Assembly (NCBI GenBank): GCA_973895155.1
Contig: OZ316899.1
Span: 10,104,287-10,168,286, forward strand
Source of the DNA: Marsupella aquatica
Lineage: Eukaryota > Plantae > Marchantiophyta
DNA: 64,000 bases
Reading direction: 5' to 3'
Shown: positions 12,691 through 53,846 of the stretch, piece after piece
Numbering within the stretch: the first letter of the stretch is position 1
How the letters are laid out: the number at the start of each line of letters is the position of its first letter
Translations under genes and position numbers: made by a program
Notes under the pieces: model-generated
Seen by the model: only the letters and a program-made list of their open reading frames with translations
What the model was told of the DNA's origin: nothing
Database searches by the model: none

Positions 12691-12691
12691 G

Positions 12692-29600: not shown

Positions 29601-31328
29601 GTTGCTGGTGCCGTTCTCTCCTTCTCCAGCATTTTCAGCAGATTTTGCATGCCTGATTGTTGCATCGGCAAGTCTTCTTTCCTTGGCCGAAACACCTGCT
29701 CGATCATAGGACTGGCAGGCTTGTTGGGCTCTTCTGTTGTTGGCCTCTGCTCCGGAACCTCCTCCAGTGCCCTTGCCGATAGGGGAAGTACTAGGGCAAA
29801 GATTTGACTTCTGGCATACCGGCACAACAGCGGCATGTGATAGCCAAGCCGGGACACGCTTCCCATGCCGATCGCCTGTTGTTCCTCCTTTAAGATCTTC
29901 TTCAGTTGGTTGAGGAGGTACTCGTTGTAATCCCGGCTTGGGTCTGGCCTTTTTGCCAGGTAGACCTGAGCCTTGCCGATCTCTACCCTCGGCAAGTTAC
30001 AATGCATGGTCACCCGCAAGAAATCGATCATCTCTCCGATGTGCGGGTTGGTGTAGGTGTTTCGGAAGAAGTCATTCTTTATTGATGGTCTTGGGAACGA
30101 CCGGAACTCCTTGTCAGGTAAGGTCTTCCTGGTATCAACCTTGGTCTTATTACCCATCGGCAAGCCAAACACCTCGGCAATCACCCGGGGAGTGAGATAT
30201 AAATCCTTCCCATACACCCTCGTGGAATTGGTCTCGGGTTCCCATGATCCCACAAATTCTAATAAGTCTGAGTCCGGCACCTCCAACTTCAGCCACGGTA
30301 ATCTTACAAAGGTTTCCAAGCCGGATCCGGCCATGAAGCCCTGGTACTTCTTGGTCTGCATGGCCGTAAAGCATGCATCCTCCTCCCGTGCAAAATGTAA
30401 TTGCACTTCCTCTGGTAGGGTCGCCGCCCAGCCTTTCCAGGTGTCATCCTTTGTTGGAATGGCATTGATGGGATCAACCTCCTCCTCTTCGGCTTCTCCC
30501 TGCCTCCTGCTCTGCTGCTCTGCTGGCTTCCTTGGTGCCGCCGACCTCATTCTTTTTGCCGGGGTGGCCTCTTCATTGTTGTTTCCTTTCCTCTTCATCT
30601 TGGCTGCCGTGGATGTTTCTCCTAGCACAGTTGCCTTTGTCCACCCCTCCGTGCTACCCTTCAACTCCCAGTGCACGTCATTGCAGCGGTTGATGGCTTC
30701 CCGAATGCCGATGATTCTGTCTTCGCAAAACAGAAGGTCATCGAGCTGATTGGCAGTAGGAGTCCACAAGAAGTCGGCCTTGATGAGTTCTCCTCCTAAG
30801 AAGGCAGACTTCTACAGCTCCCACAGTCGAGCGAGCTCTTGCCGTTCTTGAGCTGCTCTCTCCGATTCTTCATCCTCGTAAGTCCCAATGTACTCAGTTG
30901 CCCGTTCGAATAGGCATCCCCAAAAATATGTCGCTTGATTGACGTTGCTCATACCCTCCTTGACTTGATCGTTGGTATCTGTTCCCACCCAGAGTGCTTG
31001 CCTAAGCAGCTGACAGTATTTGGCCTCCCGTAGTCGTCTGCCCAGTTTGTGCTTGCAAATGAGCCACCATTCCTCGCGAGCGGTCCTTACCCCTCTCCTC
31101 CTTTGGTCTTCCCTCCCGTTGGTCACCCCTAGCCGCCGACGCTTAGCACGCCCTAACCCTAATCGTGTTCTCTCCCCGACGTCCTTACTTCCGGCCTCGG
31201 CCCGGGTTCCATAGTCACCCTTAATTGTTTATATTTTCCTTGTCTTGTTACTATACTAAGGTGTTTCCAGGGTACACTCCTGCTTTTACCATGTAAACCG
31301 GCCTAGTGATTCCTGGCTAGGCATCACA
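26618..31328 (-). mobile_element. 4,711-bp solo LTR (Gypsy-type) containing long ORFs
   Basis: Ends TGTGGTGCCT...AGGCATCACA form a near-perfect 10-bp inverted repeat; 5-bp TSD CTTCT (26613-26617, 31329-31333); no gag/pol and no internal direct repeat; sits in an intron of element 2. Confidence 0.85.
27528..31126 (-). pseudogene. LTR-encoded protein (up to ~1200 codons): plant-mobile-domain/Athila-ORF-like region plus long coiled coil; a few stops and at least one frameshift
   Basis: ORFs 30812-31126, 29396-30769 and 29189-29371 share a frame. Motif SGLETFV...LLEFVGSW...RVYGKDLYLTPRVIAEVFGLP is present, and 27528-28931 is heptad-rich. Confidence 0.65.
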
Positions 31329-32150: not shown

Positions 32151-33539
32151 ATCCTAATTAACACCATCTAAACCGTAGCAAGCAAAGACTTTTGAGAAGA
32201 CTTTCATACAAGGTAAAACTTGTTAACTTGTTAAGTGCCCTCAACGTGCCGATCAACGGGAAAAAATGCCAGCAGCCCCTACACTACCCAACTTTTGTGC
32301 AAACGGCAAGGGTTTGTCAAGTGCTACCCAACGTGTCGACTGCATTACCGCCAAGGTTTTTCCCCAGGATTTTACGAGGGAACCCAATAGCCACATTGGA
32401 TTCCATTCCAAATCCAATTGTTCTTCCGAGCGCTCTTGACTCGTCCTACTCACTGCATTTCGCGTGAACCCTCTACCACAGTGGGCTCCATCGTTGCTAC
32501 ATCCTTTCTCCAGCCCATTCTCTCCGGTAGCTTGACTCGCTCGGGGAGATTGTTGCTTGTCGTGTCCAATCCAATTTGAGCTCCTACCATAGCATCACGT
32601 CTCAAGGTTTACTAATGCGCAAGCTGTGTGCGGGGCTGTGTGGGAGGCAGAAAGGGCAACGATGAAGGTTTACCCTTGCGGAACGACACTTCAACCCTAA
32701 TCCCTCATTTTATTGTGTATTGTCAGTTGCCCCGTATGCGCGTCTAAGGTTCTGTGTTTGCTTGCAAGGTCGGGCCAGGCTACTGTTTGGTTTTGCATTT
32801 CCTAGACAAAGCTGCATTGTGTTCGTGAGTGGACCTCGTTTTTGGTGCTCCTGTTTGTGAGTGGAGCCGGCGATCAAGGGAGTCTGGGAAGTATTGGAGT
32901 AGCCTGACTGAGCTCAACGCAAGGCAGAAGTGGAATGCAGGTGGAGTGCGCTTGCAAGGTAGAAGTCGAGCGCAGCTGGAGTGTTCACATTGATCTGTGC
33001 GAGAAGGGCGACTGCAAGCTGAGCTGCAGGAGTGGTGTTGGAGTGCAAGTCGGGCTGTGGGAGTGCTGCTGATGCGCTGAGGGAACCTGAACCTGTTGAT
33101 GCAGTCTGGAGGGCGCCAAAGTTGTAGTTGTCAAAGGAGTTTGCTCCCTGTTGCTGCTGCCTGAGGGGAGCGCTGCTGTTGGAGGCAACTGTAAGTTGAA
33201 CCGGTTGTGTACAGGTTTTTCCCTTTCAATTCTTTTGACCACATTCGCTTCTTTTGGTAGTGTATACACTTTGGCATTGTGGGCATTCTATTTCTTTATT
33301 TTGTGTTCCCTATCTATGTACCTGAAAAAGCGTGATCATGGGAGAGAATTAGTTTACAGTGTGTCGCGGAAGCAGGCCAACGCTTATACTATGTTGGCAA
33401 ATTCTGAGCAGAGAGCAGGGAGTGTAACTGTTAGAGTATTGTCAGCCTCGAGGCTATTGTTGTTATTTCCAATGGTTCTTGCATTGTCCCGGAAACACAA
33501 CCGCATCAGCCTATTCATTAAAAGTGTATTATTATTTGA

Positions 33540-33870
33540 TTTATGTACATTTGGGCAATGAAAAGTGTACTTTTGGGCGAGGAAAATTGTACATTTGGCC
33601 AATGAAAAGTGTACATTTGGGGATAGAAAAGTGTACAATTGGCCTAAAGAGTGTACATTTGGGCAATAAAAAGTGTATATTTGAACATCAAAATAGGTAC
33701 ATTTGGCTCTAAAAGTGTACATTTGAGTACATTTGGCCTAGAAAGTGTACATTTGAGTGAAAGAAACATACATTTGGCTTAAAAAGTGTACATTTAAGTG
33801 CAGTTGGTCTAGAAAGTGTAACTTTGAGTGCAACAAAGTGTACATTTGGCCTAAAAAGTGTACATTTTCC
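33540..33870. repeat. Subterminal repeats (AAAGTGTACATTTGG), left end of the Sola-like element
   Basis: More than 10 imperfect copies; 4 further copies at 46680-46760. Confidence 0.9.
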
Positions 33871-34204
33871 TACCAAAACTTATTATAATCATTTAAAAGA
33901 AAGGAATGAATAGAAAAATATTTTTAATTATGCAAAAAAGCAAACATTCATATTCATAATGATCAAAAGTTTAGAAAATGAGGAGATAGTATAACTAAAA
34001 CTCAATGACATGGTCTCACATTAAAACTATTAGAATAGTAAATAACTAGTACGTAAGTTACTATGTTTGAATGAGTGTCGACTATTTACATAAAAACTAG
34101 GTAAGTAACTATCTAAATTAATTTAATTATTATAGCTTCGCAAGTAACAACTAAGTCTACTTGTCCATCCTTTGGAGATAAATTTGGACAGTTTGTAGAA
34201 CATT

Positions 34205-37200
34205 TCAAGGAATCTTCAAACCTCTGCCCGCCATGTTTTCTTCTTTCATGTCAGATTTAAAACCATACATTGCAGAATTTGCATATTGCCAATGTTGAGC
34301 ATTCTCACCAAACCCTGGATCTCGTTCCCATGTCTTAGTGGACATGAAACAGTTTAGATACCGTGCACTCTCAGTCACATCAAGTTTAGAGTGTTTAGGC
34401 CTCCACCATTCGACTGGAAACATTGGAGCATATTGTTGAGGCATAGGAGGGTTTGTTGGAGATGTAGTTGGGACTTCATGCTTAGGGTCCACCGAACCCA
34501 AAGCTCTCACCAACCAAAAATGACCTCCACCATTTTTATTCTCCCAATCATCCTTAGGTCGAAGAAATACAAAGTTCCCTTCACGAATATCCTGTAGGGG
34601 AATCCACCGTCCTTGTTCTCTCTCAGCTCGAGATCCAACAAATGGTGTTGCTTGATCTTCCATCTCTTCCAAGACCTCATTTTGAAGAGCTGTCATCTTT
34701 GCATTCTCCTCATCTTCACTTGGAGGACCACTTTGTTCCGGTTGGTTGACCTTGTAACCAGTGCCGTGGTTAGTCTTAGGCCAAAATCCATTTTTCAAGG
34801 GAAATTGAGTACTTGCCTCCCCTTCTAGTGCAAGCCCATTTGTCAACAACTCCACAATTCTCTCCCAATATTTCACAAGAGGAAATCTTTCCTTATATGC
34901 TATAGATGTCTCATCAGTGCAACTCCTTCTCAAAAAATCAAGGTACTTGTTAAGAAATGGGATAATCTCTTCAGATTTTTTGTGTATCTCTCAAATGAAT
35001 TTAGCTAAGGGCTCTCCACTAGGTAAAAGAAGAGAATTTGTTGTCAGATCTATTGCCCAAATGCACCTTCCTCCAATTGGAGCCCAAGCTTGCTTTACAT
35101 GGGACTTATACTGAAATATTGGTACATTATCTCTCATAGAGAAAAGAAATGATACGGGTTTTGAGTGACCTTGAATATCTTTAACTTTGAAAGTTTGAAG
35201 ATATTCTTTGTAAGATGCAACTTCTTGTATCAATCTGGGAACTGGATGAATGCTCTCACATTCCCAAACCTCTGCCATAAGAGCAAGGAGAGTTGCAACT
35301 TCCTTGTGCTGAACTTGATATGATACCTTCGAAAAGAGTGCATCAACATCTTCGTGTGTATGACCAACCATTAGAAAAGACATTTGAACAGTTTCAAATA
35401 CTCCTCTACTCACAAGCTCACTACAAAATGCCATGACAGTCTGGTTTTTGTTATCCTTTGCTGAGTTATCCATTTGCAGTGTTAGGTGCCTTGGCAAGGG
35501 CTTGAAAGATGGACTGCCTTGTTCCCCATGCATGTCCCCTCCTTGATCCTCACCATGTTGGGTGGAGACCGTCTCCGTCTGACTGTCGGCAGCTCCATCT
35601 TCAGAACCAATATACCTATTCATTGGAATACTCTTTGGTTCCAAATATCCCTTAAAAAATGCATCAAAGTCAAGAAGGGCTTGAAAGAAAGGTCTATGAG
35701 GTTCCAAATAAAGGCCATCCAACATGTCACTTGTCTTGTCTCCATTGTACTCTTCAAGGTCTCGAAGACACTTAGCCAAGGATGTCACCGTGAAATCGGC
35801 ATCTCCTGGCCAAAGGCCAGTGACACTAAAGTGTGCATAGACTCCTGGATCCCTTCCGTGGGTCAACATCCCTGTGAGAGCAATAGGTAGTGGCATCCCA
35901 TGACCCGAAAGCGATTTAGGAGTACTGACCATTTTTGGAATCCAGGTCTTTGCTTGATCCATCTTGTCGTGAATGATGCAAAGATATTCCCCTGGATGTT
36001 GCTTAGCCATCACTCGATGAGCATAGTAAACATATCTACGTGACATCTGCTCACGAAGATGTTGCGCTCATTTTTCTTCAATTTTAGCATGCTCTTTGTT
36101 CCTTCTTTCTCACATCAAACTATCTTTGTATTCACAACAAAGAGTACACTTGGCAAATGCACCATCTTTATGGAAACTGAAGTTTGCGAATGATTTGCTC
36201 CAAATCTTGTACAGAGTATTCTCTGTAACTGGAGGAAGCCCCTCTTCCTTCATCTTTGTTCTCACATCTTCCAAAATCTCCAACTTCTTGTAACATGCTG
36301 GAAGACGATACTCAATGGAGTCTGTCCCATGAGCCCCAACATAAGGTATATGAGGCATGGGCTCTGCATTTCGAGTCAAAAAATCCTCACACAGAGCTCG
36401 TGCATGCAAGGTATTTGACCTTGTTTTCATGGAGCCCGTGTTTCCATGGAACCCAATTTTGCAACCCTCCACATATCTCCTTTTGTAATCATAATATTTT
36501 GTGTGGCTAAAGCCATGGATGATTACAAATGCATGTCTACATATGACCATACCCTTGAGAACATGGTGCCCCTTATCACGAACATCATCTTCTCTGTAGT
36601 GGAAGAGGTTGAAAATGTGTGATGTTTTTGACTCGCTAGACATCCCGTGAAATTCTATCCGGATATCTTCTATGTCTTCTCTTGGCATAGTCAGACAACA
36701 TTTTTGCTTGCAACAATTCTCTCTTTTAATTTCATCAATTGAAGCTTTTGTTGTTTTTGAAACTACCTTGGTTTCCAACAACCTTCTCTTCTTTTCAATC
36801 AGATCTACATGAGTCCTCTTGTTGAAATTGTATGGCCTTGTGCGTGGCATTCCCCTATCATTTACATTTGGATAGAGATCATCCCTATCCACCGTCTCCA
36901 TCCTCTCTGAACCTTCAACCAAAATGTCCGACAAAAAATTCCCATTTGCAAGTAGTTTTGTTGAATCAATCCGCCACCAAACCAAAGTAATTACTCCCCT
37001 ATGGAAATTGGGAAAGTATTGTGATTCCACCACATCTTTCACAACAATCCCTACATGGTCCTCACCAAGGATTTCATTGTCAACGGCCGCCGTTTCTTGA
37101 GGCATAGTGATGGTCCCCGTGGCAACCCTATTGGTTTGATCTGAACTGATGTATAGTTCGACCAACTCTGACATCCAATTTGACCGTTGGAAATAGTCAC

Positions 37201-37903
37201 AATTAGTTTTAGAAATTTCAGCTGAGGGAGACTCTGCAACAAAACTCCGCTCTATGTTGATATCATCGCCCGCATCCTTCTTTGAGAAACTCTTTCTACT
37301 TCGGACATCTGCCACATCCCAGAGAACCCATGAGTCTTTTGCCTCGTCGATTGTTTCAGCCCCGCTGTGTTTGTAAGGTAAAACCCTACTCCCATGAATG
37401 ACATCAGTGACCCTCACACTGATCCGTGATTCACCAAGTAAAATGTAGTGACATCTTTCCATTGGATTTGTATTGAAAACAACTCCAAGGGCTACACAAC
37501 ACCCAAATATGAACATTTCAACCTCATCCCCTTGCCTCAGAGTGGTTGATGAGTCCTCCTCTACAATTGGATTTTTTTCCAAATTACTCTCCGGTCAATT
37601 TGAACAACTACCTACACTAATGCGTTTTTGAGAATTTGTTATCGTTGATAGATATGCGCAAGACAAATCCCAAATAACGCAAGAATCAATGGCATCAAAA
37701 AGGTTTTCTGCCCGAGGCATTGGAAATGGTAGTTTTGTGGTTCGGTCAAAAACTTTCTCAATGAGAACGCCCATTCGATTCTCTCTCAACAATATCTTTT
37801 GAACACTATCTTGCGGGTTGATTTTTTGAACTGTCCCGCTTGCAACATTGTAACCACCAATTGTCAATATCACATTGTCTCCTCTCAAAAATATTCCGGT
37901 CAT
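34205..37903 (-). pseudogene. Sola-like (DUF7869-type) DDD transposase, ~1230 codons in one frame with four internal TGA stops
   Basis: IIHDKMDQAKT; LQMDNSAKDNKN; SFLMVGHTHEDVDALFS; CCKQKCC and FAKCTLCC upstream. The four listed ORFs are all in frame and separated only by TGA. Confidence 0.85.
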
Positions 37904-38004
37904 TCCTACAATGTGTTCACCTGCACAATTTGAAATGTAAGGTATTAGTTAACAATGGTCCCAACTAGGAAGCAGATAGGTGTGAACCCTATCCAAGGAC
38001 AGTG

Positions 38005-39095
38005 CGCAAATAGGGATCATCCCCATCAAGCAAAATAATAGGTCCCTAAACAATCCTTATCTAGCCCTAAGATCCCTGATCCCTATTTAGACGTCGGATA
38101 CGGATGATCCCTGTCCAGACGGCAGATAGGTTCTATCACTGTCCAAACAATGGACATAGATGATCCCTGTCAGAACGGTGGATAGGGTCTGTCATTGTCC
38201 AAATGGCGGACACAACTGATCCCTATCCAAATGGCGGATAGGTCTATCACTGTCCAAACAATAGACATGGATGATTCAAGGTCCGGATCACTTAGGATCA
38301 CTCAGCGGTCCTATCTGAAAGTAAAACCTTTCATATTGGGGTCCCATAAAGCAAATACCTCAAACAACGGACAAGGATCATCCCTATCCAAATGGCAAAC
38401 AGGGATCATCCCTATCCAATGGCGGACAGGGATCATCCCCATCCCAAATGGTGGACAGGGATCATCTCTATCCAAATGGCGGACAGGGATCATCCCCATC
38501 CAAACGGTGGACAGGGATCATCTCTATCCAAATGGTGGACAGGGATCATCTCTATCCAAAATCCGGACAAGGATCATCCCCATCCAAACGGTGGACAGAG
38601 ATCATCGCTATCCAAACGGTGGACAGGGATCATCTTTATCCAAATGGGGGACAGGGATCATCGCTATCCAAACAGTGGACAGGGATCATCTCTATCCAAA
38701 TGGTGGACAGGGATCATCCCTATCCAAATGGTGGACAGGGATCATCTCTATCCAAAAGCCGGACAGGGATCATCCCCATCCAAATGGTGGACAAAGATCA
38801 TCCCTATCCAAACGATGGACAGGGATCATCCCCATCCAACGGTGGATAGGGATCATCCCCATCCAAACGGTGCACAGAGATCATCCCTATCCAAACGGTG
38901 GACAGGGATCATCTCTATCCAAACGGTGGACAGACATCATTCTTATCCAAAAGCCGGACAGGGATCATCCCCATCCAAACGGTGGACAGGGATCATCTCT
39001 ATCCAAACGGTGGACAAACATCATTCTTATCCAAACAGCACATAGGGATGATCCCTATCAAAACAGCTAACAGGGATGACCCTTGTACAGACAAT
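38005..39095. repeat. 28-bp tandem repeat array built on a 21-bp imperfect palindrome GGAYAGGGATCATCCCTATCC
   Basis: Unit acagggatcatccctatccaaatggtgg; about 25 regular copies at 38370-39080, with decayed copies to the left. Confidence 0.95.
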
Positions 39096-40099
39096 TAACC
39101 TCTACACATAATTTAATGTTTGACCAAAGAAAGGTTCGATTGAGATGATCCCAATCGTGAGTTGGGCTAGATACCCCAACCTTAAGTAACTTAGATATAC
39201 AATTCCTAAATTTGATACCAATGGAATATTCTATAATTAAGTTGAAAGTTACCTGTAATGGAAATGATTCTTGAACACAAAACTCACTTAGTTTATGTTG
39301 TCAAACCAAGTAATAAAAAACTTTGTTGAAGGGGTAGTTCTCAGTAAGCTGGTAAACTAAATGCTTCAGGGGTGTGGAAGAAATTAAAACTAGATGTTCT
39401 GTCTAGAAAACAAGAGTGGCTCAATGGGGCTCCGTAATGAACGGACCTGGTTGAGAGACTGAATGAAAATCTAGAAATGAAAATACCAAATGAGGACCAG
39501 CCGGAGCAGCCCAAGTATCTTATACCATTTATTCAAGATCGCTCTTACGGATAAGGCGATGCGTGATCAGCTTTAAGCAACGGCGGAGTTTAGGGTCGAG
39601 TGGATTAGGTCACCCACGCCACACAACCAAGTCGGGCAGCACAATTTACGCAGCCTTGCATTTAGGGTTTGCAGCTCGGCCTCCCACGTGTTGAGTCGGC
39701 CTTGCCTCGCCTTGGTGTGGGGGGGTAAAGGAGGCAAGAGGTCCCACTTGGGCCTCATTCTTCTTCCCTCCTCTTCTTCGCTCCTCCGCTCCTCCACCTC
39801 ATTCGCTTCCAGTCTCCCTAGGCCCCACTCCACCTCCGCCTTCACACTAGAGTTTCTGCCCTAGCCGCCACGTTAATTGCCCTAGATCTAACGCTCTGTG
39901 ATCCTCCACGTGTCCATACGACCACGTGTCACAAGATGGATCCATCTAGACCTATTCATGTGTCTTTGGTCATTGAGCCAACAGAGGAGATAGACCTCTC
40001 CTCCATTGAGGATGTGGTAGACACGGCCCTCGAGGATTCCAGAGCCTTCCAATTGCTCAATCCAAGTAAGTATCTCGGTAACAAGTTGAATATTTGTGC

Positions 40100-40645
40100 A
40101 TTGGACAAAGATCATCCATGTCCAAGTAGAGTCCAAGTAGAAGATAGTGATCTTTATTAGGAATTGGATAGAGATGATCTCTATCCAAACTGAGGACAGA
40201 GATCATCCCTGTCCAATTGGATAGGGATCATCTATTTCCAAAATGACGATAGAGGATGTCCAACCAGAGGATCGAAATTGTCCTATCAGAGGATGCTGAG
40301 GAACTTTATTTTTAATTGGATAGAGATGATCCCTATCCAAGTAGAGGATAGAGATGATCCCTGTCCAATTCCTAATAAAGATTGTCAGTATCCTCTAATC
40401 GAACAAAGATGATCTTTATTAGGAATTGGACAGAGATCATCTCTATCCAAGTAGAGGATAGAGATCATCCCTATCCAAGTAGAGGATAGAGATGATCCCT
40501 ATCCAATTCCTAATAAAGATTGTCAGTATCCTTTGATCGAACAAAGATTATCTTTGTTACGAATTGGACAGAGATCATCCCTATCCAAGTAGAGGATAGA
40601 GATCATCCCTGTCCAATTGGATAGGGATCATCTCTGTCCAAACTG
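40100..40645. repeat. Cluster of the same 21-bp palindrome (GGATAGAGATSATCYCTRTCC) upstream of the ParB-like gene
   Basis: About a dozen copies separated by aagtaga/aatt spacers. Confidence 0.9.
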
Positions 40646-40699
40646 TGAGAGAACCTCATCTTTGTCAATTACAAATTATGATTTTCCAAACTAATATGC

Positions 40700-43600
40700 A
40701 TGGATGGGACTATTGCAGGGAGCGATCTAAATGGATTGAAACCAGCAATTTCAGAATCAGACTGCTCCGAGGGAGTCTTGTTGGAGCAGAGCAAACCAGA
40801 TTTTTGTTGGGGCCTTGAGTTCTCTAGAGTTGATTTTGATTTCCTTAGCACGTCAGAGAGACGGGATCCCATTTTGTGCATAAAGGTCAGAACAGAAGAT
40901 CAAGAGACTCTTGTACTCGGACCTGTAGTCTTCATTGGAATTGAAGGAAGAGGGTTTGTTTCCATCATTCTTGAGCTCCATGAAAGGATACGATGGGTTA
41001 AGCTACATCTACCATCAAAGGCGTATTCTTCAGAGTTCAATGTTGAGTGGTCTGCTGTTGGAGAACTTGGCGTGATGGCAATGGGCTTTTTCCCTAAGTC
41101 GTATTCAACTCAAAAGGTGATTGCTGGAGTGAAGGGGATTCTTCCACTTGACATCATGTATGGGTTTCAATATGTGAAGCTGAATATCCATAAACACCAA
41201 GGGAATTATGCATTTCCGGTGACATGGATTTTAAATAATTTTCTTGACAAGGGAAGATTCCTATCTTTGGAATCAGGTGTTTGCCTTGACAAGCAAATTG
41301 CATTTGCGGAGGAGTTTGCAATGGATAATGCAAAAAAGTGGGTAGAATCATTACCCAAGCCTACAAATGTTGCACCAGTAGTGGTGAACGAGCTTCCAGT
41401 AGTTGTTAACAAAGAAGTTCTCAAAGAAGTTCCCAAACCTAGAAAAATATCTCAGGAGACAACAACAGGGACTGCAGGAACAACGGCTGGGACAAGCACC
41501 AAACAAGTGGTAGGGAAGCGAAGACTAAGAGAGAGGAAGGGTCGCGAGAAAATTGAGACATTGTTGAAGGAACCCGAGAAGAAGCCAGTGGTGAAGAAAC
41601 AGAAAACTGACAAGTCTCTTTTGCGGTCAACCCCTGCGGACGTACAGATGCTCCCAGAAGATGAGGGAGACAAACTTGATGCCCCTGAGGAGAAGAAGGT
41701 CTTAGAAGGAAATGATGTTCTCCAGAGAATAGAGCAGTACTATACTTTTGGGATAAATGAACTGTTTTCTATTCCAGTGGAGAAAATTGTGCCTGCACCT
41801 GCAAGATTATGTTACAGGATGCTCAGTAGTACCCATGTGAAGCACATAGCCGAATCCATGGTCAAAAACCCCGGACATGAACCTCACGTCGCGGACCTGC
41901 TTCCTTACAGTCTGAAGCTTAGAAAGTTGCTCCATTTTGACAGCACGGAGAACGACCGCAAAGACTTTCTTGCAGGAGTGAAGAAAGGCAAGATTGGTTT
42001 CTTTGCCATCAGTGGGCAACATTTGGCTAGGGCGGCCAAGTGGGTTCTCGAATGGGCCAAAACTGATGCCAAGCTCACAGTGTTGGCAAAAAAGTTAAAA
42101 TACAGGAAGTCTAGATTATTGTCAGACCTTACACCATCGGCTATATTGGTTGAGCACTCAATGAGATCAAATGCCATCAATTCGACGATGGTGTTTCAAT
42201 CGTGCTTCAAAGATACAATTGTTCATGCAAGGAAACAATTCCTTGAATGCGGAGGACCAAGAAAGCCAAAGCACGGGGACAACAAGTCAAACGCCCAAGA
42301 GAATCAAAAATTTCAGGTGAGAAACACTTTTCTTGTTTGGACAGAGATGGTCTCTGTCCAAGAGTGTGACCGTCCGTTACATTGATTTTAGTTCAATATA
42401 TTTCTGGTTATGACTTGGATGGAGATGGTCTCTGTCCAAGAGTGTGATCGTCCATTCTAGAGATTTCTCTTCCTTCTACTTTTGGTTATGACTTGGATGG
42501 AGATGGTCTCTGTCCAAGAGTGTGATCGTCCATTCTAGAGATTTCTCTTCCTTCTACTTTGGTTATGACTTGGATGGAGATGATCTCTGTCCAAGAGTGT
42601 CATCGTCCATTCTAGAGATTTCTCTTCCTTTTACTTTTAGTTATGACTTGGATGGAGATGGTCTCTGTCCAACAAGCAAGTGATAGTTTGTTGTCAAATC
42701 TCATTGATTGTAGATAACTTATTTTCCCCTAATTTTGACTGTAGGATTATTTGGCATTGGCAAGGATGACCATGGGGAGAAAAGACTTGAAAAATGTATA
42801 TTGGTTGCTCTTTGCCGAGAATGATCTTTTCGAGCTCTAGCGGTTAGTGTGCCAGATGTGGATTGATGGACATCTTCCTGATGGAGCTGGTACACAGGGA
42901 AACAAAAGGTCCAAAAAGGGTATAACGGTCGCAATGTTTCGTTGTTTTGATGGTGAAATATCAAGTAGAGATTTGACCAGAATTTTGAACAAGGTGAAGT
43001 CAGGTCAGGTTTTATTGAAGAAGGATCCGACAAATAAGTCAGATGTTCCAGCAATGGAGGACTTTGCAAAGGAGGTGAAGATATTGATCAAACTGAAGTC
43101 TCTTATTGGAGATTACTACTTCAAGAAGGATCCAAAAAACTTCCCAGCAGATAGTGATTGGGTTAAAGTAATTGAGGTCCTCCCATTGTTAGGTGTCGAG
43201 TCGGAGTTGAACAGGTGCCGAAGAGCGGCTGGTGAAGTATGGTTGACAAATTTATTGAACTCTAATCATACAAAGGAGAGTGAGATATTGCCAATGACAT
43301 TGGTGATGCGTCTAGATGATATTTACTGTCAGAAGTTTGGCGGAGGGACAAGTTCTCGGACCCAACCGTGGGTCACATTTTTTAGTAACAACCTAATGAA
43401 GACAGTCGATCCAAAGTCGTTGGAAGAACAATCTCCAACATGCCCTCTTGCAATTGTTGATTTCAGCCGACTTCAACAGAAGGAGTGGACCGAAGCAGAG
43501 ATTTTGGTACTCTTCCAATACATAGTAGAGCTACCACGGAATCCCACCATTGTTGTGATGATAACTGTCCATCCGGGTTACCTTGTACTGAATGTCCTAA

Positions 43601-45116
43601 GCGCTCTTCGTAAATTAGGACATTCAAAACTCTGACTATTCACATTGAGTATGGGAGTTATTACCGAGATGATCAACCTCACCCTCACGACTCATGTTGG
43701 AAGGGAGGAATAGAAGAAGTTATCTTTGCGGGAATTTCTTGCGAAGAGAACATCAGCTGGGATGAAGTGTTCAAGCCCAACCAGATGAAGCCAAAATGGG
43801 TGTACGGTGAAAAGGATACTGATTTCGTGGTTGAGAAGGTCAAGGGAAAGGGAAAGGCAAAGGACGCGGACGAGGAGTCATTACATGAAGATCTAAGAAA
43901 TATGATGACCCCAGAAGAGGCGGCAATACTTCTGCACATGGCACCTCGATTTGAGACGGTCGGCGCACGGGATGGGTGGGTGAATCCTCACGCCAAACCC
44001 ACACGGATGATCCAAAAGATCATCCAAACACTGTCCGAGCCGGGGGATTTGATTCTTGACTTTTTCTTTGGCGGTCAAGTGATGAAGGCGTCCCTTTTTT
44101 CTCAACGTGAATGTTTTGTTTATTGTGACTCTCAACATGAGAGACATTTTGTGGAAGCATATGCTTCGTTCCTTTGTGAGAAGGTTCCCACCATCAAAGA
44201 TCGTTCTGATCGCTATGTCGGTGGAAGTTCTAGACATTGGGAACCCTCTTCTGCCGCTGTTGCTATTGACGATGAATCAGATGGTGATCAAGAAGATGGA
44301 GCTGACCAATCAGTCAAAGACGATGGGCCATCGGAGGAGGCATACGTGAAGAATTTGGATGACCGAGTTGGCAAGGGTGAAAATATTGACCTTGTGGAAG
44401 ACGATATGATTGTTGGATCTGCACCTTGCAGTTCACCAATTACAGATGTTGCCCCCATGGGACCCAACGAGGGCCAGTATGATGATAACTTGGATAGAGA
44501 TGGTCTCCATCCACAATTGCCTGGACAAGAGATGGAAGCTGATACGTTTGAAAAACTGTCTTCAAACAACCTTCTCAATCAAGGTGCGGAGAGGCATGGT
44601 GAGTCCAATGAACTCGACATATTGGGATTGAGACCGTAGCCCATCCAAATAGCTGACATTCCCGTGAATGAAGCAAGTGCATCCACGACTGCTGACAACC
44701 AGGCAAGTGCTTCAAGTTGTCCCGATACACTCTTTTCCGCTTTTGATGACAAATTGGTGTTTGTTCGATCACAATCAAGAAGTCCCGTTATCCTTCCACT
44801 CTCAAAAAAGAAAGGGAAGAGAGTAGGATCAACTGGATATAAGTCACTTGAATATGATTGTCGATGTTACGTGTGGAAAAGTGGACCCGATTTAGGAACT
44901 GAAGTTGCATTGGATGTTGCTCAATCAATTTTGAACAATGACTCGTACAAAAAGCACAAGAAAGATCCAACTTATAGAAGTGGAGAATTGGGATTGATGA
45001 CTCCGGTTTGGTCTGCACCTTATTGGATAGAGGAGAGTACCTCCGATGTCAATTATGAGATCCAACAAGAGCTCGATGATGATATCTTGATTGATGAATA
45101 TGGATCGCATTGTTAG
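40700..45116 (+). pseudogene. Large gene with a ParB/sulfiredoxin-like domain followed by a beta-class N4/N6 DNA-methyltransferase-like domain
   Basis: ParB-like: SIPVEKIVP...YRMLSSTHVKHIAESM...FAISGQHLARA. MTase-like: LAIVDFSR...IEEVIFAG...NPHAKPTRMIQKIIQTLSEPGDLILDFFFGG...SQRECF. Intron 42317-42744; stops at 42838 and 44637; frameshift at ~43630. Confidence 0.7.
42335..42675. repeat. ~78-bp tandem repeat (about 4 copies) in the intron, each copy carrying the 21-bp palindrome
   Basis: tgacttggat recurs at 42411, 42489, 42566 and 42644. Confidence 0.9.
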
Positions 45117-45368
45117 CCAAGGTCTAGATTGAGCGATGTGACCTTATCAATTTGATATAATATAGTCTGTATAATTATACTTCAAGTTTAACAATTAGAG
45201 CATCAGTATCAATATCCATCTCCTCTTTACGGTTTCTCAATGAATACGATCAGTATGCAGATATATTTTCTTTGTGGTTGGCCACTTGTGTTGGGTTGAC
45301 AGAGATGATCTCTATCCAAACTTCAAATGTGGTTTTTTCTCTAAGATTGGTATTTGTTGCACTTGCAG

Positions 45369-46404
45369 AACCAAGACTTTGTTCCATCAAGCGCAAATTG
45401 CTGATTTTGGATCTTAACAAAATACTTTGGGATTCAGTTGAATTCCAAAGCAAGGGCAAATCCAGAAATGTTGTGACCCCAAGTGGAGTGCATTGGGATA
45501 GAAAAAATGGAATTAGTCGCATGTACGCAGAAAGGCCAGGGCTCCATGAGTTTCTAAAGTTGGTTTTTGACTGATTTGACGTTGCAATTTGGACATGTGC
45601 TGGGGTACATCGAACAGTGAAATGCTGAACTTGATGTTCACTGCTGAGGAGCGGTTGAAACTTAAGTTTGTATTCACACAGGTGGAAGCCTTTGACACAG
45701 GCATTCAAAGACGTGACATTACAAACGGAAAGGCAAATGTGCTACTGAAGGATTTTCGGGTGGTATGGAGTGGATTTGGAAATCTATATGATGAAACCAA
45801 CACCCTCCTTGTGGATGACTCCCCCCTTAAGGCATTTGCCAACCCAAGCATGATCGGACTATTTCCAGTGCCCTACACGCATGCCAATGGTGGAGATAAT
45901 TTTCTTCTAACAATTCTTTGGCCTTGTCTTGAGAAACTATCCCATGCAAGTGACATTAGATGTTATTTTCTTCTTAACTCTCCACTGTGGTCTCTATTGC
46001 ACATAAAGAGAGACAAGGTAAAAAATGAAATTACTTATGATCAACTTAGTAAGAGATGTGCAACAAAAATTTGGAAGTCACAGTTTACGCATAGTGTGTT
46101 GGACCTCAATAGCAATGAGATTCCTTGGAACGTGAAGCATCGTATATGTAGTTTACGTCCTGAGGCAGAACTTGATGATGCACTTGTCATGTCACTTGCT
46201 AAAGCATTTGTAGGAAGGGACTATTCAGGTCCACATAGAGAAAATCCCAGACACTTTTTCCGGGAGATTATAGCCATTAGGAACAACACCACCAAGTTTC
46301 AGCTCCCTAAAGATAAAGGGACTTGCAACCGTGACACTAGGGTAGATAGTAAAGGAGACAAGGGCACGTGCTCAAATACACATTGTAAGGAGCACTTTGT
46401 TTAG
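45369..46404 (+). pseudogene. FCP1/NIF-family HAD (CTD phosphatase-like) domain protein
   Basis: KLLILDLNKIL; RPGLHEFL; F(DV)AIWT; LLKDF; NTLLVDDSPLKAFANP. TGA at 45572 and a frameshift at ~45620. Confidence 0.85.
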
Positions 46405-49400
46405 AGATCTGACTCATGTTAAGCCCCTTAGATAGAAGAAAGACATTGTAAATTTGGAGATAATTGTATATTATTTTATAATCTATTTGGAGTTATGTCA
46501 TTTTGTTCACACATATTCAAGGGTTTCTTTGTGCTGAAATGTTTTTATAAGTATGATCTCTATCCTACTATTCTTTGTGAATTAATAAATAATGATCTCT
46601 ATCCTATTATTCTTTGTGAATCAATAAATGATATAATATGTATTATTTATTAATATAATACTAATATGATTTGGCCTATAAAGTGTACATTTAGGGACCA
46701 AAAAGTGTACATTTGGGTTTCTTAAAGTGTACATTTGGGGACATGAAAGTGTACATTTCAAGACTGATTTGTGAACAAAAGAAAATACACTTTTAATGAA
46801 TAGGCTGATCCGCTCTCTCAGTCTTATCTTTGCATTTATGGAGATGCTCCTACCGTAGTCTGGGAGTTGCCGACATTGTTGACCTCTTGTTGAGCCAAAG
46901 CTTTATTGCGCTGCCCGGTGCGGTGATGTTGAGTTTAGGAGTCTGCAAAACACCCTCAGCGCCAAGCTGAGCATTCAAGTTGGCTGCTCTTCGCAACTTA
47001 AAAGTGAGCGCACGACGCACATTGGCAGTGACCATTTTTTGTAGCTGCAAGTAGTGATGGTTTCACTTTGGGAGTTGGGAGCTCCTATGAAGGGTCAGCT
47101 GAACAAGCCTCATTGCTATTGGGAGTTGGCATTGGCAAGGAGGGCGGAGGGAACGGATTGGCAGCTGCAAGCTAGATTGGAGTTGTTGCGACTAACTCTG
47201 GACATTGCAAGGGTGTGTTTCGGGTGAGTTTTTGGTTGAAGAACCGGGAAGAGCCTGCGGTTTGCCATCAAGGAGCTGTACTTGGAGACCGGCCCTCGTA
47301 GCTACATTCTTCCATCCAGCACATGGGTGAGCAAAAGTTCATTTTTATCTCTCATTGTTTTTCTCCGACTCGTGCTTTGATCCAATGTATGTATTGTTGC
47401 TATGTCACGCTGTCAAGAGAGACTGGACATTGTAGCTACTCATTCTTGATCATGTCATCAGGCATAGGACCTCAACTGCGACGGAAAGATTCCACATTCT
47501 GTTGACCCAATTTAAGCTATAGGAGGCAAGAGCGGAGCCATGACACACTACAATACAGTTGGAGCCCACATTCGCCCAATGCAATCTTACTTGTTAGCTT
47601 CTACCTGCATCCTACATTGACCCTACATCTTGGAGAGGTGGAGCGAGGGCGTGCATCATGCAACCTAAGCCGGCGGATCTTGCCAGTCACTCAGGCAGGG
47701 CAGGGGTCCACCTTTGGAAGGTACAACCTAACTCAGAATTATTTGAATGTAGGACTTGGCTTCGATTGGCTCCTCTGTTTTGCTGGCTTCTTCATGTCTG
47801 CTCATAACATTTTTCTATGCACATAGTTATGGATAGAACATAGTAATTGGGATCATATTGTCTTCTGCTTTGTTGGGGATCCTCTTTGAATATATACTTG
47901 CATGGTCACATGTGTATGTAACTACATACACATTCTACCTGAGGGGAGTATGATTGTACACCTCAGGTAAAACCAAGCCAAGCCCTATAAGTAATTTTCT
48001 TAAAAGTAGAAAATATTTTCCATATGGGTATCTTCAGCTTGGGTTCAGGGAGTCAACCGAGCTGCTTGTTCTCTGCAACTTGTGAAGTGAATGAAGAGAC
48101 TGAATCCCCCTTTGAACTAAAATGCATACTTAGATGCTGTTTGGCCTCCTGCTGCGTCCTCTGGCTTGGGTAAGTTGGCTTTTGGCATTGTTTGTGAAAT
48201 GTGAGCGGATTGGGGCCCTCACCAAAATGTTCACAAGCTTTCACCCTCGTTCATTCAGCGATGCATGCTTAATTTGGACAACCAAGTGTAAAGTTGACTC
48301 TTTCCGAATATTGTAGTCTGTTTTGCCTTGAACTGGGCCATGGATGAATTGAGCTTGGAGGCAGTTTTTTCATTCCCATCTTCCTTTTGTCAAGTGAGCT
48401 TTTTGCCACCCCCTTTTGGTGGGCCCATTTTTAGGAAGATCCTTATTGTGAACACAGTCTGTACTTTGGTTATGAAGTTTGACTGAGTACTGCGGGCCAC
48501 TTCCTGTGCCAACCTATGCTGCAATTTGCTTTGTTTTGCATCCACTCCTTAGTTTCCTTCTATTTTATGGACGACTTTCATGCATATCATGTTTATAAGA
48601 GCTTTTGTGCTGATGCACAATATAGTTGTGCCAACTGAATGCCAGTCTGCCTACACTCCTGCTCATTTCACTCTTGCAAGCAGTGAACTACCTCTTTGTT
48701 GCTCACTGCCTCTCTGTTGTTCAATCTTTCTGGATATTGTAGTTTGCAACATTGTTGATTAGGAGTGTTTCATGCTAAGTTTATACTATGACCTCTAGTT
48801 GGAATCAAGGGAATGACACAGTGAGTGGGAACTGATAGTTCAGGTTGGTTGTTGTTGGTGAGGCAAGTATAGCTCCTGCTCACCTTGCTGATCGAAGGAC
48901 GTCAAAGGATGTGAACACAAGACATCTGAACAAAAGCAACAGTTATGGTGAGCACCCGCAATGCTGAACATGTGCGGCTTGCACGCAAGACAGAGAGGTT
49001 GCGTCTTGAGTATGTGAGACTTGGGATCCTTCCTGCCCAGTCTGCATGGTACTTTGAGTACCCTGTTGTTGCCAGGAATAACTACAGTCGGCCTGTTCCT
49101 GCTTCTCTACCCTTCCCAACATCCTTGGTATTTCTGTCTCTTGTACATAACCCGCCACAAATTAGGGCCCAAGGGTGTGTACACAGCTGCCAATATGACT
49201 GTCCTGCCTGTCGGGCTTCTGGCCCAGAGTTGGATGACCGTTCTCTTGGATGTCGATTTTTGCATAGAGCACAATGTATCATCTAGAACCACTCGCCATC
49301 CTGCAGTGTGCCTGGAGATGTCACTTGTCCTGGCCTCCCAGACCCCACCACCGGTGCGTTTGGTGTCTACACATGTTTGGATCACACGCTGTAGAGGAGC

Positions 49401-50179
49401 ACTTGTCACACCGTATGCACAGACCAGAGTGCAATGACCTATAACTTAATGCTCTGACTTAAGCACCGTAGATATTTATTTAAAATTTTGAAGTTTGAGC
49501 AATTTTGGGTGCAGGGTTTAGGATCCATAGTATATAACTTATCCTCATTTGGCTGCACTAAGTGGAATATCCTAATGTAAGAATTAAGCAAGCTCTCTTT
49601 AAATTCTCCAACGAAAGACTGCTTGAATGACTGCTTTAACTTGGCCAACATTGTAACATTATATGACAAAATTAATGGGCCATTGTGACGGGTACCCCGT
49701 CACGGGAAGTCACACATAACTGGTTGCAAAGGCCGATACCTTGTTAATAGTCAATGTAAATAAGCCATTTTTTAATTTTTAGTTAATTCCGTCATTATAG
49801 GTTGATGATGCCCCAGGTGACTTTATATTCTTTCTCTCATAATAGTTCTAAGATTTGCGGCGACCTAAGTGGGCAAATATTTTGGGACCTTGAAACTAGC
49901 CAGGACCAGCCCCATAGGACTTACCGTTTTGCTTCAAGAGCTATTGTTGAGACCCCCATTGCAAAGTCAGGAGAGGGGGGGGTTTTTTTTAAAATAAATC
50001 CCTCCTCAGGAGGGCGAGTCCCATTAGTGGCCGTCCGAGAGAAAGAGGGGCTGCCTCGCGAGCCCATAGGGCTGCGTGCCCGGGCGATTAATGGGGCTCC
50101 GCGAGCTGAAGGGGCTGCCTCGCGAGCCCATAGGGCTGCGTGCCCGGGCAATTAATGAGGCTCCGCGAGCTGAAGGAGC

Positions 50180-50420
50180 GCAAGCGAGCGGGGGGGGGGA
50201 GTTAAAGGGCCTCCCGCGAGCTGGGAGGATCACGCGAGCGGGGGGGAGTTAAAGGGCCTCCCGCGAGCTGGGAGGATCACGCGAGCGGGGGGGAGTTAAA
50301 GGGCCTCCCGCGAGCTGGGAGGATCACGCGAGCGGGGGGGAGTTAAAGGGCCTCCCGCGAGCTGGGAGGATCACGCGAGCGGGGGGGAGTTGAAGGGCCT
50401 CCCGCGAGCCGGGAGGAATG
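50180..50420. repeat. 47-bp GC-rich tandem repeat (~5 copies) in the LTR; second copy at ~60922-61162
   Basis: Unit cgcgagcgggggggagttaaagggcctcccgcgagctgggaggatca. Confidence 0.95.
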
Positions 50421-50840
50421 GCCGCGCGCCCTGCATAGGGCCGCGCGCAGGAGGACGCAAGGGTAAGGCCCGAGAAATAGGCCGGGGCGCATGGCGAAGG
50501 CGCCAGGAGTTTTTTCGGTTCTATTTTTTTTTCCTTCCTTTTTCTTTCCCTCTTCCTTTTGCACGACCCTCTCATTGCCGAAAGCAAAAACGGGGTTCTT
50601 CTCTCTCTTGCCGGAAGCTCTCTCCAGATTCTAATTATTTTTGAAGCTCTCTCTTTCATGGTGGATTAGTGGGGCTTGCTGGCGTCATTCTTCCAGGCAT
50701 TAGTGGCGGCCGCACGGAGTAGTGACGGGAAATTGAGAGAATTTAAGTGATCGGGCTACGGGGGCTGTTTCGGGCCAGGGAATTGACATTGCCACGGGTG
50801 ACGGGATTGGTGATTGAGAAATTGATTTCGGGATGCATGG

Positions 50841-52697: not shown

Positions 52698-53828
52698 ATA
52701 GGCGTACGGACGTGGGTGTACGGCCTCCAGATTTCCAACATTTTAGTGGGGGGTCACTCATGGGCTTGTTGGGATGAGCTCGCGGAGCTGATTCCAACAA
52801 GAGGCGGCGCTCCTCAAACGGAGCCAGGATGAGCAAGTTATGGCCTGGAGAACTTATGTTTTTGCGGTACGGAAACGGCCATAACTCAGGCGTCTGAAGT
52901 CCGTTGAGGGAGCGACTTAGTGATTCGGAAGCAGGAAAAGAAGAGCTATCCAGGGGTGAGCTCAGGTGTGCACTTGGAAGGGCACCTAGTTTCGGCCATT
53001 TTGGGGTGCCTCTCACTTTCAGGGTTCACGTGTACTGTTGGGGCGCCGTCGAAGGCACCGTCGGCCCCCTTGTTTTGGGTTTAGGGTTTTAGCAGCATGT
53101 GTGTGCCGCATGCTCCTCTTCAGTTTAAGGATTTCTCTTAGTGCAAGGTTTTAGCGGCGCCGCTAGGGTAGCCGCCACCGTTGTGACCCTGTGAGGGGTG
53201 CTTTGGTGTGATTTTTCAGTATTTAGGGGGATAGCCCCGAAGTAGTTAGGGGGACTCAGTGTGAAGTTAGCAAGGAGGGATAGAGTGGAGCCTGAGGAGT
53301 TTGAAAGCGTGTTCAGAGTAGTGAGGGGGAGCCATACTCATTGTCCGGAGAGGCAGGAGTTGAGTAGACGGCAGGAGGCCGGGTTACTCATGCAATGTGT
53401 ATCGTTTTTCCCAAGAGATATGGATCTGTACATTTGACTTGATGGGCTTTTGTTGTGTGTTCCTTCTCCCTTTTTCGCTTTCCGAATTGTGTTCTCCCGT
53501 TCTATGATTTGAAGAAACTTGCTTGGTTTGAGTCGGCCTTGTGAGTAGGGGTGGTGACAGCACTCTTTGGGTGACTCCGAGTGAAGGTGTAGTGGGGTAG
53601 TCGGCAGGACTTGATCAAAAGCTGTGGGGTGAGGGTAGTCGGTAGACTTGATCAAAACCTACATTTCCGGGAGCGGAAACCAAAATACTCATCCTGGTGT
53701 GAAAAGAATCCAAATAGCGTCCCTCCACGACCCCGTAATACGATACCAACGGTTTAAGCGAAGAAAAGTGCGGTTTGCACGTATTAACCGTTGGAGAGGC
53801 AAGTGACATAAGTGTGGTCTTTTGTTTT

Positions 53829-53846
53829 TGGCGCCGCTGCCGGGGA
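53829..53846 (+). promoter_or_regulatory. Primer-binding site, tRNA-Asp type (TGGCGCCGCTGCCGGGGA)
   Basis: One mismatch from the Athila-type PBS TGGCGCCGTTGCCGGGGA. Confidence 0.85.

Follow-up and report, generated by a model that had tools for sequence, protein, structure and literature searches.

An inactivated DNA transposon of a bryophyte family with a ParB-like and methyltransferase-like gene, an NIF-like gene and lineage-variable palindrome arrays

Introduction

DNA transposons of the Sola superfamily have terminal inverted repeats (TIRs) of variable sequence, 4-bp target site duplications (TSDs) and DDD-type transposases, can reach 15 kb or more in length, and occur in bryophytes (moss) (PMC10741241). 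The Sola2-Fanzor1 elements, 12-15 kb in length, carry a non-transposase passenger gene (PMC3627910). In this study we examined a stretch of 64,000 nucleotides (hereafter the window) from the liverwort Marsupella aquatica (GenBank assembly GCA_973895155.1, contig OZ316899.1, positions 10,104,287 to 10,168,286 of the forward strand), in which an element with TIRs and a 4-bp TSD carries, divergently from a candidate DDD transposase, a cargo of two genes together with arrays of palindromes. Coordinates are those of the window unless a contig is named.

To our knowledge, accessory systems through which a transposon acts on its own chromatin or transcription have been described in very few cases, with VANC as the main example. 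KDZ transposons with TET/JBP were reportedly described by Iyer et al. in 2014. VANC, encoded by the VANDAL elements of Arabidopsis (MULE), targets short motifs in tandem repeats of non-coding regions, and these motifs differ sharply between related elements (PMC5735166, PMC10398659). Among retrotransposons, DIRS1 has a dead methyltransferase (MTase) domain, which is a precedent for an inactive domain retained for binding (PMC4738411), and the DAM-LTR/EpiLTR elements have active DAM domains (10.64898/2026.05.21.726589). Cargo in Sola and MTase domains in retrotransposons are therefore already known. In the literature that we covered, which was limited, no description was found of a DNA transposon with a module made up of a ParB-like-MTase-like gene, an NIF-like gene and palindromes.

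Results

A family of autonomous cut-and-paste DNA transposons in bryophytes is represented at 33505-46809 by one inactivated copy. This element is 13.3 kb in size, and one TIR pair with a 4-bp TSD encloses the divergent transposase and two-gene cargo. Its ends and transposase gene are as follows.

33501-33504, no strand: left TSD copy, CCGC, flanking the left TIR
33505-33530, forward strand: left TIR, 26 bp, with 2 matches in the window
33544-33867, no strand: left subterminal array of ~22-bp repeats (AAAGTGTACATTTGG), putative transposase binding sites
34205-37903, reverse strand: transposase pseudogene, a single frame of ~1232 codons with N-terminal TNP1/DUF8039-like repeats and a DUF7869 core
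46675-46758, no strand: right subterminal 22-bp repeats
46784-46809, reverse strand: right TIR, 26 bp, identical to the left TIR
46810-46813, no strand: right TSD copy, CCGC

The TIR (ATCAGCCTATTCATTAAAAGTGTATT) occurs exactly 2 times in the 64-kb window, with 0 mismatches and an expectation of 0 from shuffled sequences, and CCGC stands immediately outside both copies. The near-palindromic subterminal 22-bp repeat AAAGTGTACATTTGG has 11 matches against 0 expected, solely inside the two ends, and these repeats are probably transposase binding sites. In the remainder of the window, no sequence matching the element was found. Nine disabling lesions (four in the transposase, three in the MTase-like exon and two in the NIF-like gene) indicate that the present copy is pseudogenised.

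Mobility is proven by comparison with relatives in another liverwort. A search with the N-terminal piece of the transposase returned a protein of Calypogeia fissa at locus L001, where a 12.7-kb element (1530-14197) lies in mirror orientation with a homologous TIR (ATCAGAGTATTCATTAAAAGTGGACATT) and the TSD TTCT. A second C. fissa copy, on L006 (1267-15178), has the TSD ATAA, and three insertions with three different 4-bp TSDs (CCGC, TTCT and ATAA) make the role of chance negligible. The TIR core ATCAsnnTATTCATTAAAAGTG is kept in C. fissa and in L019, the subterminal motif is nearly the same in C. fissa (L001 14036-14119), and TIR and subterminal repeats as a whole are nearly unchanged among the window, C. 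fissa and L019. The last of these came from a scan of metagenome contigs with the TIR pattern, in which 11 of the 12 matches were chance matches in unrelated contigs and L019 was a relative.

The core of the transposase is Pfam DUF7869 (E 7.5e-45) and follows repeated TNP1/DUF8039-type domains; its frame holds four stops (37595, 36110, 36068 and 34991) and no frameshift. The candidate catalytic triad consists of the acidic motifs IIHDKMDQ, LQMDNSAKDNKN and VGHTHEDVDALF, which are invariant across all relatives and whose pattern, read by eye from a published supplement, resembles LMDFKEN, WSDGAKHFKS and YHGKSDVDRHF of Sola2_DFa-2. Pfam gave no match to the catalytic domains of CACTA, KDZ, hAT, MULE, PIF or piggyBac, and the TNP1-type N-terminal domain was the sole cross-superfamily match. 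As the TSDs are not TTAA, Kolobok and piggyBac are excluded; membership in CACTA/Chapaev was also rejected.

The 4-bp non-TTAA TSDs, the TIRs and the candidate DDD core, with its Sola2-like motif pattern and no Pfam match to another superfamily, make Sola (Sola1/2/3) the most consistent placement, although membership is unproven; the size of the element is also comparable. The present family differs from known Sola elements in the TNP1/DUF8039-like N-terminal repeats of its transposase and in its cargo, which is a three-part module of a ParB-like-MTase-like gene, an NIF-like gene and palindrome arrays rather than Fanzor, and the likeness of the transposases is one of motif pattern by eye. The initial annotation of this DNA had proposed a Sola-like transposon with 26-bp TIRs, a CCGC TSD, a DDD transposase and a pseudogenised copy. 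Its ends, its TSD and the candidate DDD transposase are confirmed by the matches described above and by the DUF7869 core, and its decay by the stops and frameshifts across three genes, while the Sola label is consistent with these features and goes no further. That Sola elements are normally described with a transposase only, as was also stated there, needs correction in view of Sola2-Fanzor1 (PMC3627910).

The cargo consists of two genes on the forward strand.

40700-42316, forward strand: cargo gene 1 exon 1, 539 codons, intact, with an N-terminal region, a Lys-rich linker and a predicted ParB/Srx-fold domain with SGQH
42317-42744, forward strand: cargo gene 1 intron, phase 0, GT..AG, holding a 78-bp tandem array at 42337-42672 with degenerate palindromes
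42745-45116, forward strand: cargo gene 1 exon 2, with a helical domain, a beta-class amino-MTase-like domain, an acidic linker and a conserved C-terminal tail
45386-46404, forward strand: cargo gene 2, a HAD pseudogene of the NIF/FCP1-like type, in which motif I is LDLNK and a Cys motif lies at the C-terminus; Pfam NIF at 45589-46404

The full order of DUF7869 transposase, ParB-like-MTase-like gene and NIF-like gene recurs in L001, L006, Riccia sorocarpa L003 and contig L021, and the cargo trio was seen without a transposase on contigs L004, L007 and L022. In every element whose region was seen to both ends, cargo and transposase are inseparable. In Riccia, the transposase is again divergent, the ParB-like-MTase-like gene is annotated as one 820-aa spliced protein, and the NIF-like gene follows. 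This common synteny in L001, L006, L003 and L021, with one TIR/TSD pair per element, assigns the cargo to the element family. An all-against-all HMMER search with cargo exon 1 gave 100 clusters of relatives, and all of those with a named source belong to these liverworts. Intact long cargo open reading frames (ORFs) were found elsewhere (777 aa in L006, 553 and 578 aa in L004, and 901 aa in L007).

When the window is compared with C. fissa, nonsynonymous sites differ at a proportion (pN) of 0.20-0.39 and synonymous sites at a proportion (pS) of 0.57-0.81; synonymous divergence between lineages is saturated, so only pN and pS are quoted. On these alignments, the cargo carries a signature of purifying selection between lineages. 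Identity is lower in the cargo proteins (41-53%) than in the core of the transposase (63-68%). Compared with each other, the young pair of C. fissa copies decays roughly neutrally, as is expected after insertion.

These data agree with the proposal in the initial annotation that the cargo is part of the element. Three observations had been named there as contradicting it, and none was made: the cargo is not confined to this copy (it recurs twice in C. fissa, in Riccia and in L021), it has no TIRs or TSD of its own, and it does not behave like ordinary host genes decaying neutrally, as pN is far below pS between lineages. The expectation of intact cargo ORFs under purifying selection was borne out by ORFs of 553-901 aa and by the pN and pS values, and the young C. 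fissa pair was uninformative on this point.

One of the relatives is itself degenerate. The homology of the Riccia copy to the transposase ends after the first catalytic motif, with a palindrome array next to it (L003 2873-3033 and 3207), and its NIF-like gene has three in-frame stops; the region of Riccia KAL3695087.1 is thus a decayed transposon copy. The TIRs of this degenerate copy were not located, with one weak candidate at L003:334 that has no partner. In L021, the spacer between transposase and cargo (4251-6840) contains a (TCTA)n microsatellite of 2.6 kb, together with two additional ORFs (385 and 287 aa).

The exons of cargo gene 1 were analysed separately, and folds and alignments were obtained from intact natural homologues. 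As read through, its first ORF has 561 aa (40700-42385, forward strand). Exon 2 is interrupted by two stops (42838 and 44637) and by one frameshift (~43615-43635), and a 150-aa ORF that had been listed separately is the conserved C-terminal tail of cargo protein 1. The AF2 model of the ParB-like part, built on 55 relatives, has a pLDDT of 87.9. Foldseek matched it in the PDB with Noc, ParB, sulfiredoxin, PadC, KorB and SbnI, at E-values from 4e-3 upwards and probabilities of at most 0.99, and in BFVD with phage ParB, Spo0J, Srx and 'modification methylase' models (E 1e-4 and weaker). The predicted structure supports a ParB/Srx fold, as a fold-level call only. Pfam DndB was the best ParB-related profile match (E 0.05, one member), a PDB profile search with the ParB-like family gave Lys-rich low-complexity matches only, and phmmer with the N-terminal 247 aa of cargo protein 1 found nothing in the PDB.

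In the ParB-like part, SGQH(S/L)xxAAK replaces the NTP-binding GERRxRA (Box II / P-motif GxxRxxA). This replacement contains no Arg, and its H, G and Q are invariant or nearly so. DndB-like proteins have the signature DGQHR, to which this motif is closer and with which it has 'GQH' in common, and the present family resembles ParB-parS in pairing a ParB/Srx fold with clustered palindromic sites. It differs from both in having no ParA, no Arg of the CTP motif and no significant profile match, and in being nuclear and eukaryotic. A canonical ParABS partition system was rejected as a reading. For P0003, Logan contigs of two independent runs (SRR18067266 and SRR18067426; 1823 and 1739 bp) have an ORF for the ParB-like part only at exactly 151-1683, which suggests a discrete, perhaps intron-retaining, transcript that encodes this part alone.

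Motifs of Pfam N6_N4_Mtase lie at 43767-44639 (forward strand). Against the PF01555 cut-off of 26.7 bits, the window piece scored 28.2 bits and L001 26.9 bits, and the L006 ORF and P0111 came just under it at 23.5 bits. The model of the MTase-like part was of moderate quality (pLDDT 64.5, core 70-90), and Foldseek matched it with CcrM, M.RsrI, MboIIA, PvuII, M1.HpyAVI and N4CMT (E 8e-8 to 1e-4 over 260-310 columns); the family profile matches residues 223-269 of M.RsrI (motifs X-I) at E 4.4e-9. The permuted order of the beta class (IV ... X-I) and a Rossmann-like fold are both present in the model. Motif I has an invariant GG and a one-residue deletion relative to FxGxG, and reads DFFFGG in the window. 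The position of motif IV follows the predicted beta4 strand (LAIVDF in L001) and reads DFSR, as in the window, DFGR, DFTR or DFAR in the main clade (DF[SGTA]R), and elsewhere DTTS, IIEAQD or VLDLHG, so that (D/N/S)PP(Y/F/W) was found in no lineage examined.

The same domain order, a ParB/Srx fold and then a beta-class amino-MTase, is known from ParB-N6_N4 MTase fusions of phages and prophages (PMC12704722, PMC4738411), whereas the present gene is eukaryotic, spliced and transposon-borne and has lost DPPY and GERRxR. When the MTase-like and ParB-like parts were compared by tblastn with 50,697 phage records, one weak match to motif I was the only result. This points to an old, transposon-specific lineage, and a recent capture from phage was rejected.

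The NIF-like gene contains a stop at 45572 and a frameshift at ~45600-45620. Pfam NIF (PF03031) matches the window piece at E 2e-5, L001 at E 7e-15 and relatives at E 2e-16, and UBLCP1 (E 5.5e-11) and CTDNEP1 (E 2.8e-5) were the best solved relatives in a PDB profile search. Motif I, DxDx(T/V) in active members, reads LDLNK in the window and C. fissa, LDCNG, LEGSG and LDVEG (Riccia), LELNG (L022) and LEIIG (L021). The acid/base Asp at +2 is missing in all of these, and the nucleophile Asp is also missing in L021, L022 and P0121. The C-terminal motif CNRD..CSN..C is conserved. The protein therefore shares the NIF HAD fold with FCP/SCP phosphatases, as judged by Pfam, and differs from them in being transposon-encoded and in this Cys motif. 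TIM50 is a non-catalytic NIF relative with a degenerate motif I, and in this respect it is like the present protein.

Structure prediction, which the initial annotation had recommended for the repaired proteins, was applied to intact homologues and supported both a ParB/Srx fold and a beta-class amino-MTase fold. The names that it gave to the cargo can be retained in part. The ParB label stands at the level of the fold; no sequence profile detected the domain, and SGQH(S/L)xxAA stands where ParB has the CTP-binding GERRxR. The MTase-like label stands for the beta-class fold and motifs X and I, with the catalytic DPPY missing in every lineage. The architecture of a ParB and MTase-like gene as divergent cargo beside the transposase was correctly described, with the same fold-level reservation for ParB. 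The FCP1/NIF-like label is supported by the Pfam match, with DxDxT degenerate and its nucleophile sometimes lost.

The palindrome GGAyAGrGATCATCyCTrTCC has 57 matches against 0 expected, all of them inside the element. Apart from the array in the intron, palindromes are located as follows, without strand.

36870-36890: solitary perfect palindrome in the transposase ORF
37972-39090: arrays upstream of the transposase, at 38077-38275 (56-bp units at 38103-38275) and as 25 x 28 bp at 38369-39064
40084-40641: arrays immediately upstream of cargo gene 1 (palindromes at 40162-40641), in 28-, 110- and 138-bp units
45297-45317: palindrome upstream of the NIF-like gene
46553-46647: 39-bp tandem repeat with palindrome half-sites (ATGATCTCTATCC)

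Four positions in the window are thus occupied, three of them upstream of a gene (the transposase, cargo gene 1 and the NIF-like gene) and the fourth in the intron of cargo gene 1. In C. fissa, arrays built of GTCGCCTCGAGATCATCTCGAGGCGAC with a 35-bp period stand at the same four places, and the homologous intron of L006 (10136-10322) also contains palindromes. Riccia has arrays of GGGGACGCGTCCCC and CATGAGGnnCCTCATG with a 27-28-bp period at equivalent places, one of them directly after the ParB exon. The positions are therefore kept among the window type GGATAGAGATCATCTCTATCC, C. fissa and Riccia, whereas the sequences differ, and what the window and C. fissa palindromes have in common is the GAGATsATCTC core only. 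A brief look at L022 revealed arrays with GGCTCAAGCTTGAGCC-like palindromes.

Near the end on the NIF side, each C. fissa element has, in addition to its own palindrome type, one GGGTAGAGATsATCTCTACCC (L001 1930-1950 and L006 14712-14732), which is nearer the window type and is possibly a relic of an older site specificity. The 28-bp array is open in two frames and gives rise to spurious 'proteins' of 291 and 217 aa (38195-39070 and 38392-39045) with DRDHPYP and GIIPIQ repeats. An in-frame DRDDLYP peptide is found at 36870-36890 within the transposase and at 44492-44512, where the MTase-like exon encodes its acidic linker, and this occurrence in two genes indicates that the palindromes are tolerated within coding sequence.

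Discussion

We propose that the module is a kit for element-specific DNA recognition and for transcription or anti-silencing, with a logic like that of VANC, and we give the proposal a probability of about 0.45, slightly short of even odds. The transposase would act on the TIRs and subterminal repeats, while the ParB-like-MTase-like protein would read the element's own palindromes at three promoters, through the target-recognition region of its MTase-like part, its helical and ParB-like domains, or both, and could mark all copies of the family in trans. The NIF-like protein, a relative of phosphatases of the C-terminal domain (CTD) that has no catalytic motif, would link this platform to RNA polymerase II (Pol II), the transcription machinery or regulators, with the outcome that the three promoters are kept active or that silencing is escaped. 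Fast palindrome turnover and faster-evolving cargo would correspond to the co-evolution of binder and site, as in VANC. A more specific form of the proposal, in which the family encodes a sequence-programmable self-activation or anti-silencing system of three repurposed parts (a ParB-fold domain, a dead MTase as reader of the fast-evolving palindromes and a dead CTD-phosphatase as adaptor to Pol II or regulators), is tentative and on balance unlikely.

Like VANC, the present system places an accessory protein beside tandem target-like motifs in non-coding DNA that vary between lineages. It has no sequence or fold relationship to VANC, and it consists of two genes with enzyme-derived folds and of palindromic motifs. 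The initial annotation had suggested a self-contained module that recognises its own DNA and alters its chromatin or transcription state, and had compared it with VANC anti-silencing. Recognition of own DNA gains support from arrays that are conserved in position and variable in sequence between lineages. The comparison with VANC is borne out by the element-specific tandem motifs that vary between relatives, and in its functional part it would hold by analogy. An epigenetic effect through methylation or dephosphorylation is unsupported, as DPPY is absent and DxDxT is degenerate.

The absence of motif IV everywhere and the degenerate DxDxT lead us to regard both cargo proteins as most probably pseudoenzymes retained for binding, and with these catalytic motifs missing, an alteration of chromatin by methylation or CTD dephosphorylation is unlikely. 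It is nevertheless conceivable that both proteins are active enzymes with non-canonical motifs and form a true epigenetic writer, in which the MTase-like part methylates the palindromes and the NIF-like protein acts as a phosphatase on the Pol II CTD or on a different substrate. The beta-class fold with a conserved VLDFFSGG, like the S-adenosylmethionine-binding loop, and VNPxxKP is in favour of this, as is the conservation of the motif IV position itself as DFxR in the main clade. The cores of the palindromes are like typical methylase sites (GATC in the window and C. fissa, ACGCGT in Riccia), the NIF-like protein has retained the Lys and the Thr as well as motif IV (DDSP), and retrotransposons with active DAM domains exist (10.64898/2026.05.21.726589). 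We consider active enzymes improbable all the same, since (D/N/S)PP(Y/F/W) occurs in no lineage, the distant lineages lose the D and the KP of motif X as well, the NIF-like protein is without Asp+2 everywhere and without its nucleophile in L021, L022 and P0121, and dead MTase domains in transposable elements have a precedent in DIRS1 (PMC4738411). The arrays could also act alone, as hairpin or cruciform satellites, as sources or decoys of small RNA, or as hot spots of replication or recombination, expanding and contracting neutrally and without any relation to the cargo. Tandem palindromes do turn over fast by slippage, unit sizes vary (28, 35, 56, 78 and 110-138 bp), and arrays occur in spurious long ORFs too; however, the same four positions are filled in lineages that have no array sequence in common, the arrays are restricted to the element, and the core common to the window and C. 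fissa indicates descent with constraint, all of which makes independent arrays a little less probable still than active enzymes.

In many TIR families of eukaryotes, transposition depends on a second DNA-binding protein encoded by the element, and the module might belong to the transposition machinery instead. The ParB-like-MTase-like protein, bound to the internal arrays, would then condense or bridge the 13-kb element and might bring its ends together, set the time of excision or keep copy number down, with parallels in CACTA TNPA, the Myb-like ORF1 of PIF/Harbinger, MURB of MuDR and ParB-type bridging or clamping. From palindromic sites, proteins of the ParB fold are able to bridge DNA and condense it (PMC12704722). 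Cargo and transposase always occur together wherever both ends of a region were seen, one palindrome lies within the transposase ORF, and there are half-sites close to the right end. We nonetheless find a role in transposition doubtful, though it deserves to be taken seriously, because the arrays are at promoters and in an intron and not at the termini, the termini carry their own repeats that evolve differently, and a CTD-phosphatase-like partner is hard to fit into a transpososome. That the cargo has no function at all, and consists of host fragments captured by one copy or of a nested second element, would agree with the pseudogenised state of the present copy and with the neutral decay of the two young C. 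fissa copies. The same order and intron occur, however, in four other elements of at least two species with one TIR/TSD pair each, pN is far below pS between lineages, and close host or phage homologues were not found in our searches, and we regard functionless cargo as extremely improbable. A nested second element was rejected in view of the single TIR/TSD pair per element and the shared order, and Pack-type capture of host fragments in view of the shared gene order and intron.

Several points count against the VANC-like kit. Each of its functional steps (binding, expression, chromatin) is something that we infer, and a DNA-binding helix-turn-helix was not demonstrated. Sequence profiles did not recognise the ParB-like part (Pfam with single sequences and with 36 members, NCBIfam, and the PDB profile search), and its Foldseek E-values are modest (1e-4 to 1e-2). 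The TNP1/DUF8039-like repeats at the N-terminus of the transposase could bind the palindromes instead, and the conservation of DFxR and of the GG in motif I could reflect catalysis that is altered yet real. The comparison of L001 with L006 (dN/dS, the ratio of nonsynonymous to synonymous rates, 0.3 to 2.4 at dS 0.006-0.06) gave no direct sign of selection at that scale, and the arrays of the distant lineages (L021 and L022) were given a brief look only.

With DIRS1, DAM-LTR/EpiLTR and the KDZ elements with TET/JBP, the family has in common that a domain of the nucleic-acid-modification type is kept as conserved cargo. It differs from them as a DNA transposon with TIRs and an MTase of another clade, and in adding a ParB-like domain, an NIF-like partner and palindrome arrays.

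If the VANC-like kit is real, the family offers a second case of this kind, in early-diverging land plants, and an analogue of VANC that evolved independently. Its parts are clear and can be tested: the proteins number two, the palindromes are defined, and different pairs of protein and site exist in several natural lineages. Should these pairs prove specific, plants could be targeted with them as orthogonal DNA-targeting parts. The folds of two enzymes, one a DNA amino-methyltransferase and the other a CTD phosphatase, were kept for a long time, across two liverwort classes, after the apparent loss of catalysis, a finding relevant to the recruitment of pseudoenzymes for binding. An architecture of ParB and MTase that was until now mainly one of phages and prophages is extended to a eukaryotic nuclear transposon. 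Finally, predictions of a 'DNA methylase' or 'NIF phosphatase' in liverworts (e.g. Riccia KAL3695087.1) are transposon genes, and annotation should take this into account.

Other features of the window

The element lies in a plant region rich in transposable elements, and its neighbours in the window are one Ty1/copia and one Ty3/gypsy retrotransposon. The Ty3/gypsy element (49684-64000) is young, with an intact gag-pol ORF of 1944 aa at 54064-59898. With at least 3.6 kb each, its long terminal repeats (49684-53258 and 60426 to the end of the window) are of unusual length; they are 99.8% identical, and each contains a 618-aa ORF without a Pfam match (50841-52697 and 61583-63439). The Ty1/copia element (17338-21942, reverse strand) encodes an apparently intact polyprotein of 1534 aa (gag, integrase, RVT_2), and the sole repeat found at its flanks is a 135-bp match between 16836-16970 and 23071-23205 (99% identical). 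Two further ORFs of 467 and 457 aa are located at 27528-30769 (reverse strand), in the most GC-rich stretch of the window (0.55), and have weak Pfam matches of the coiled-coil type only (ATG16, phage scaffold).

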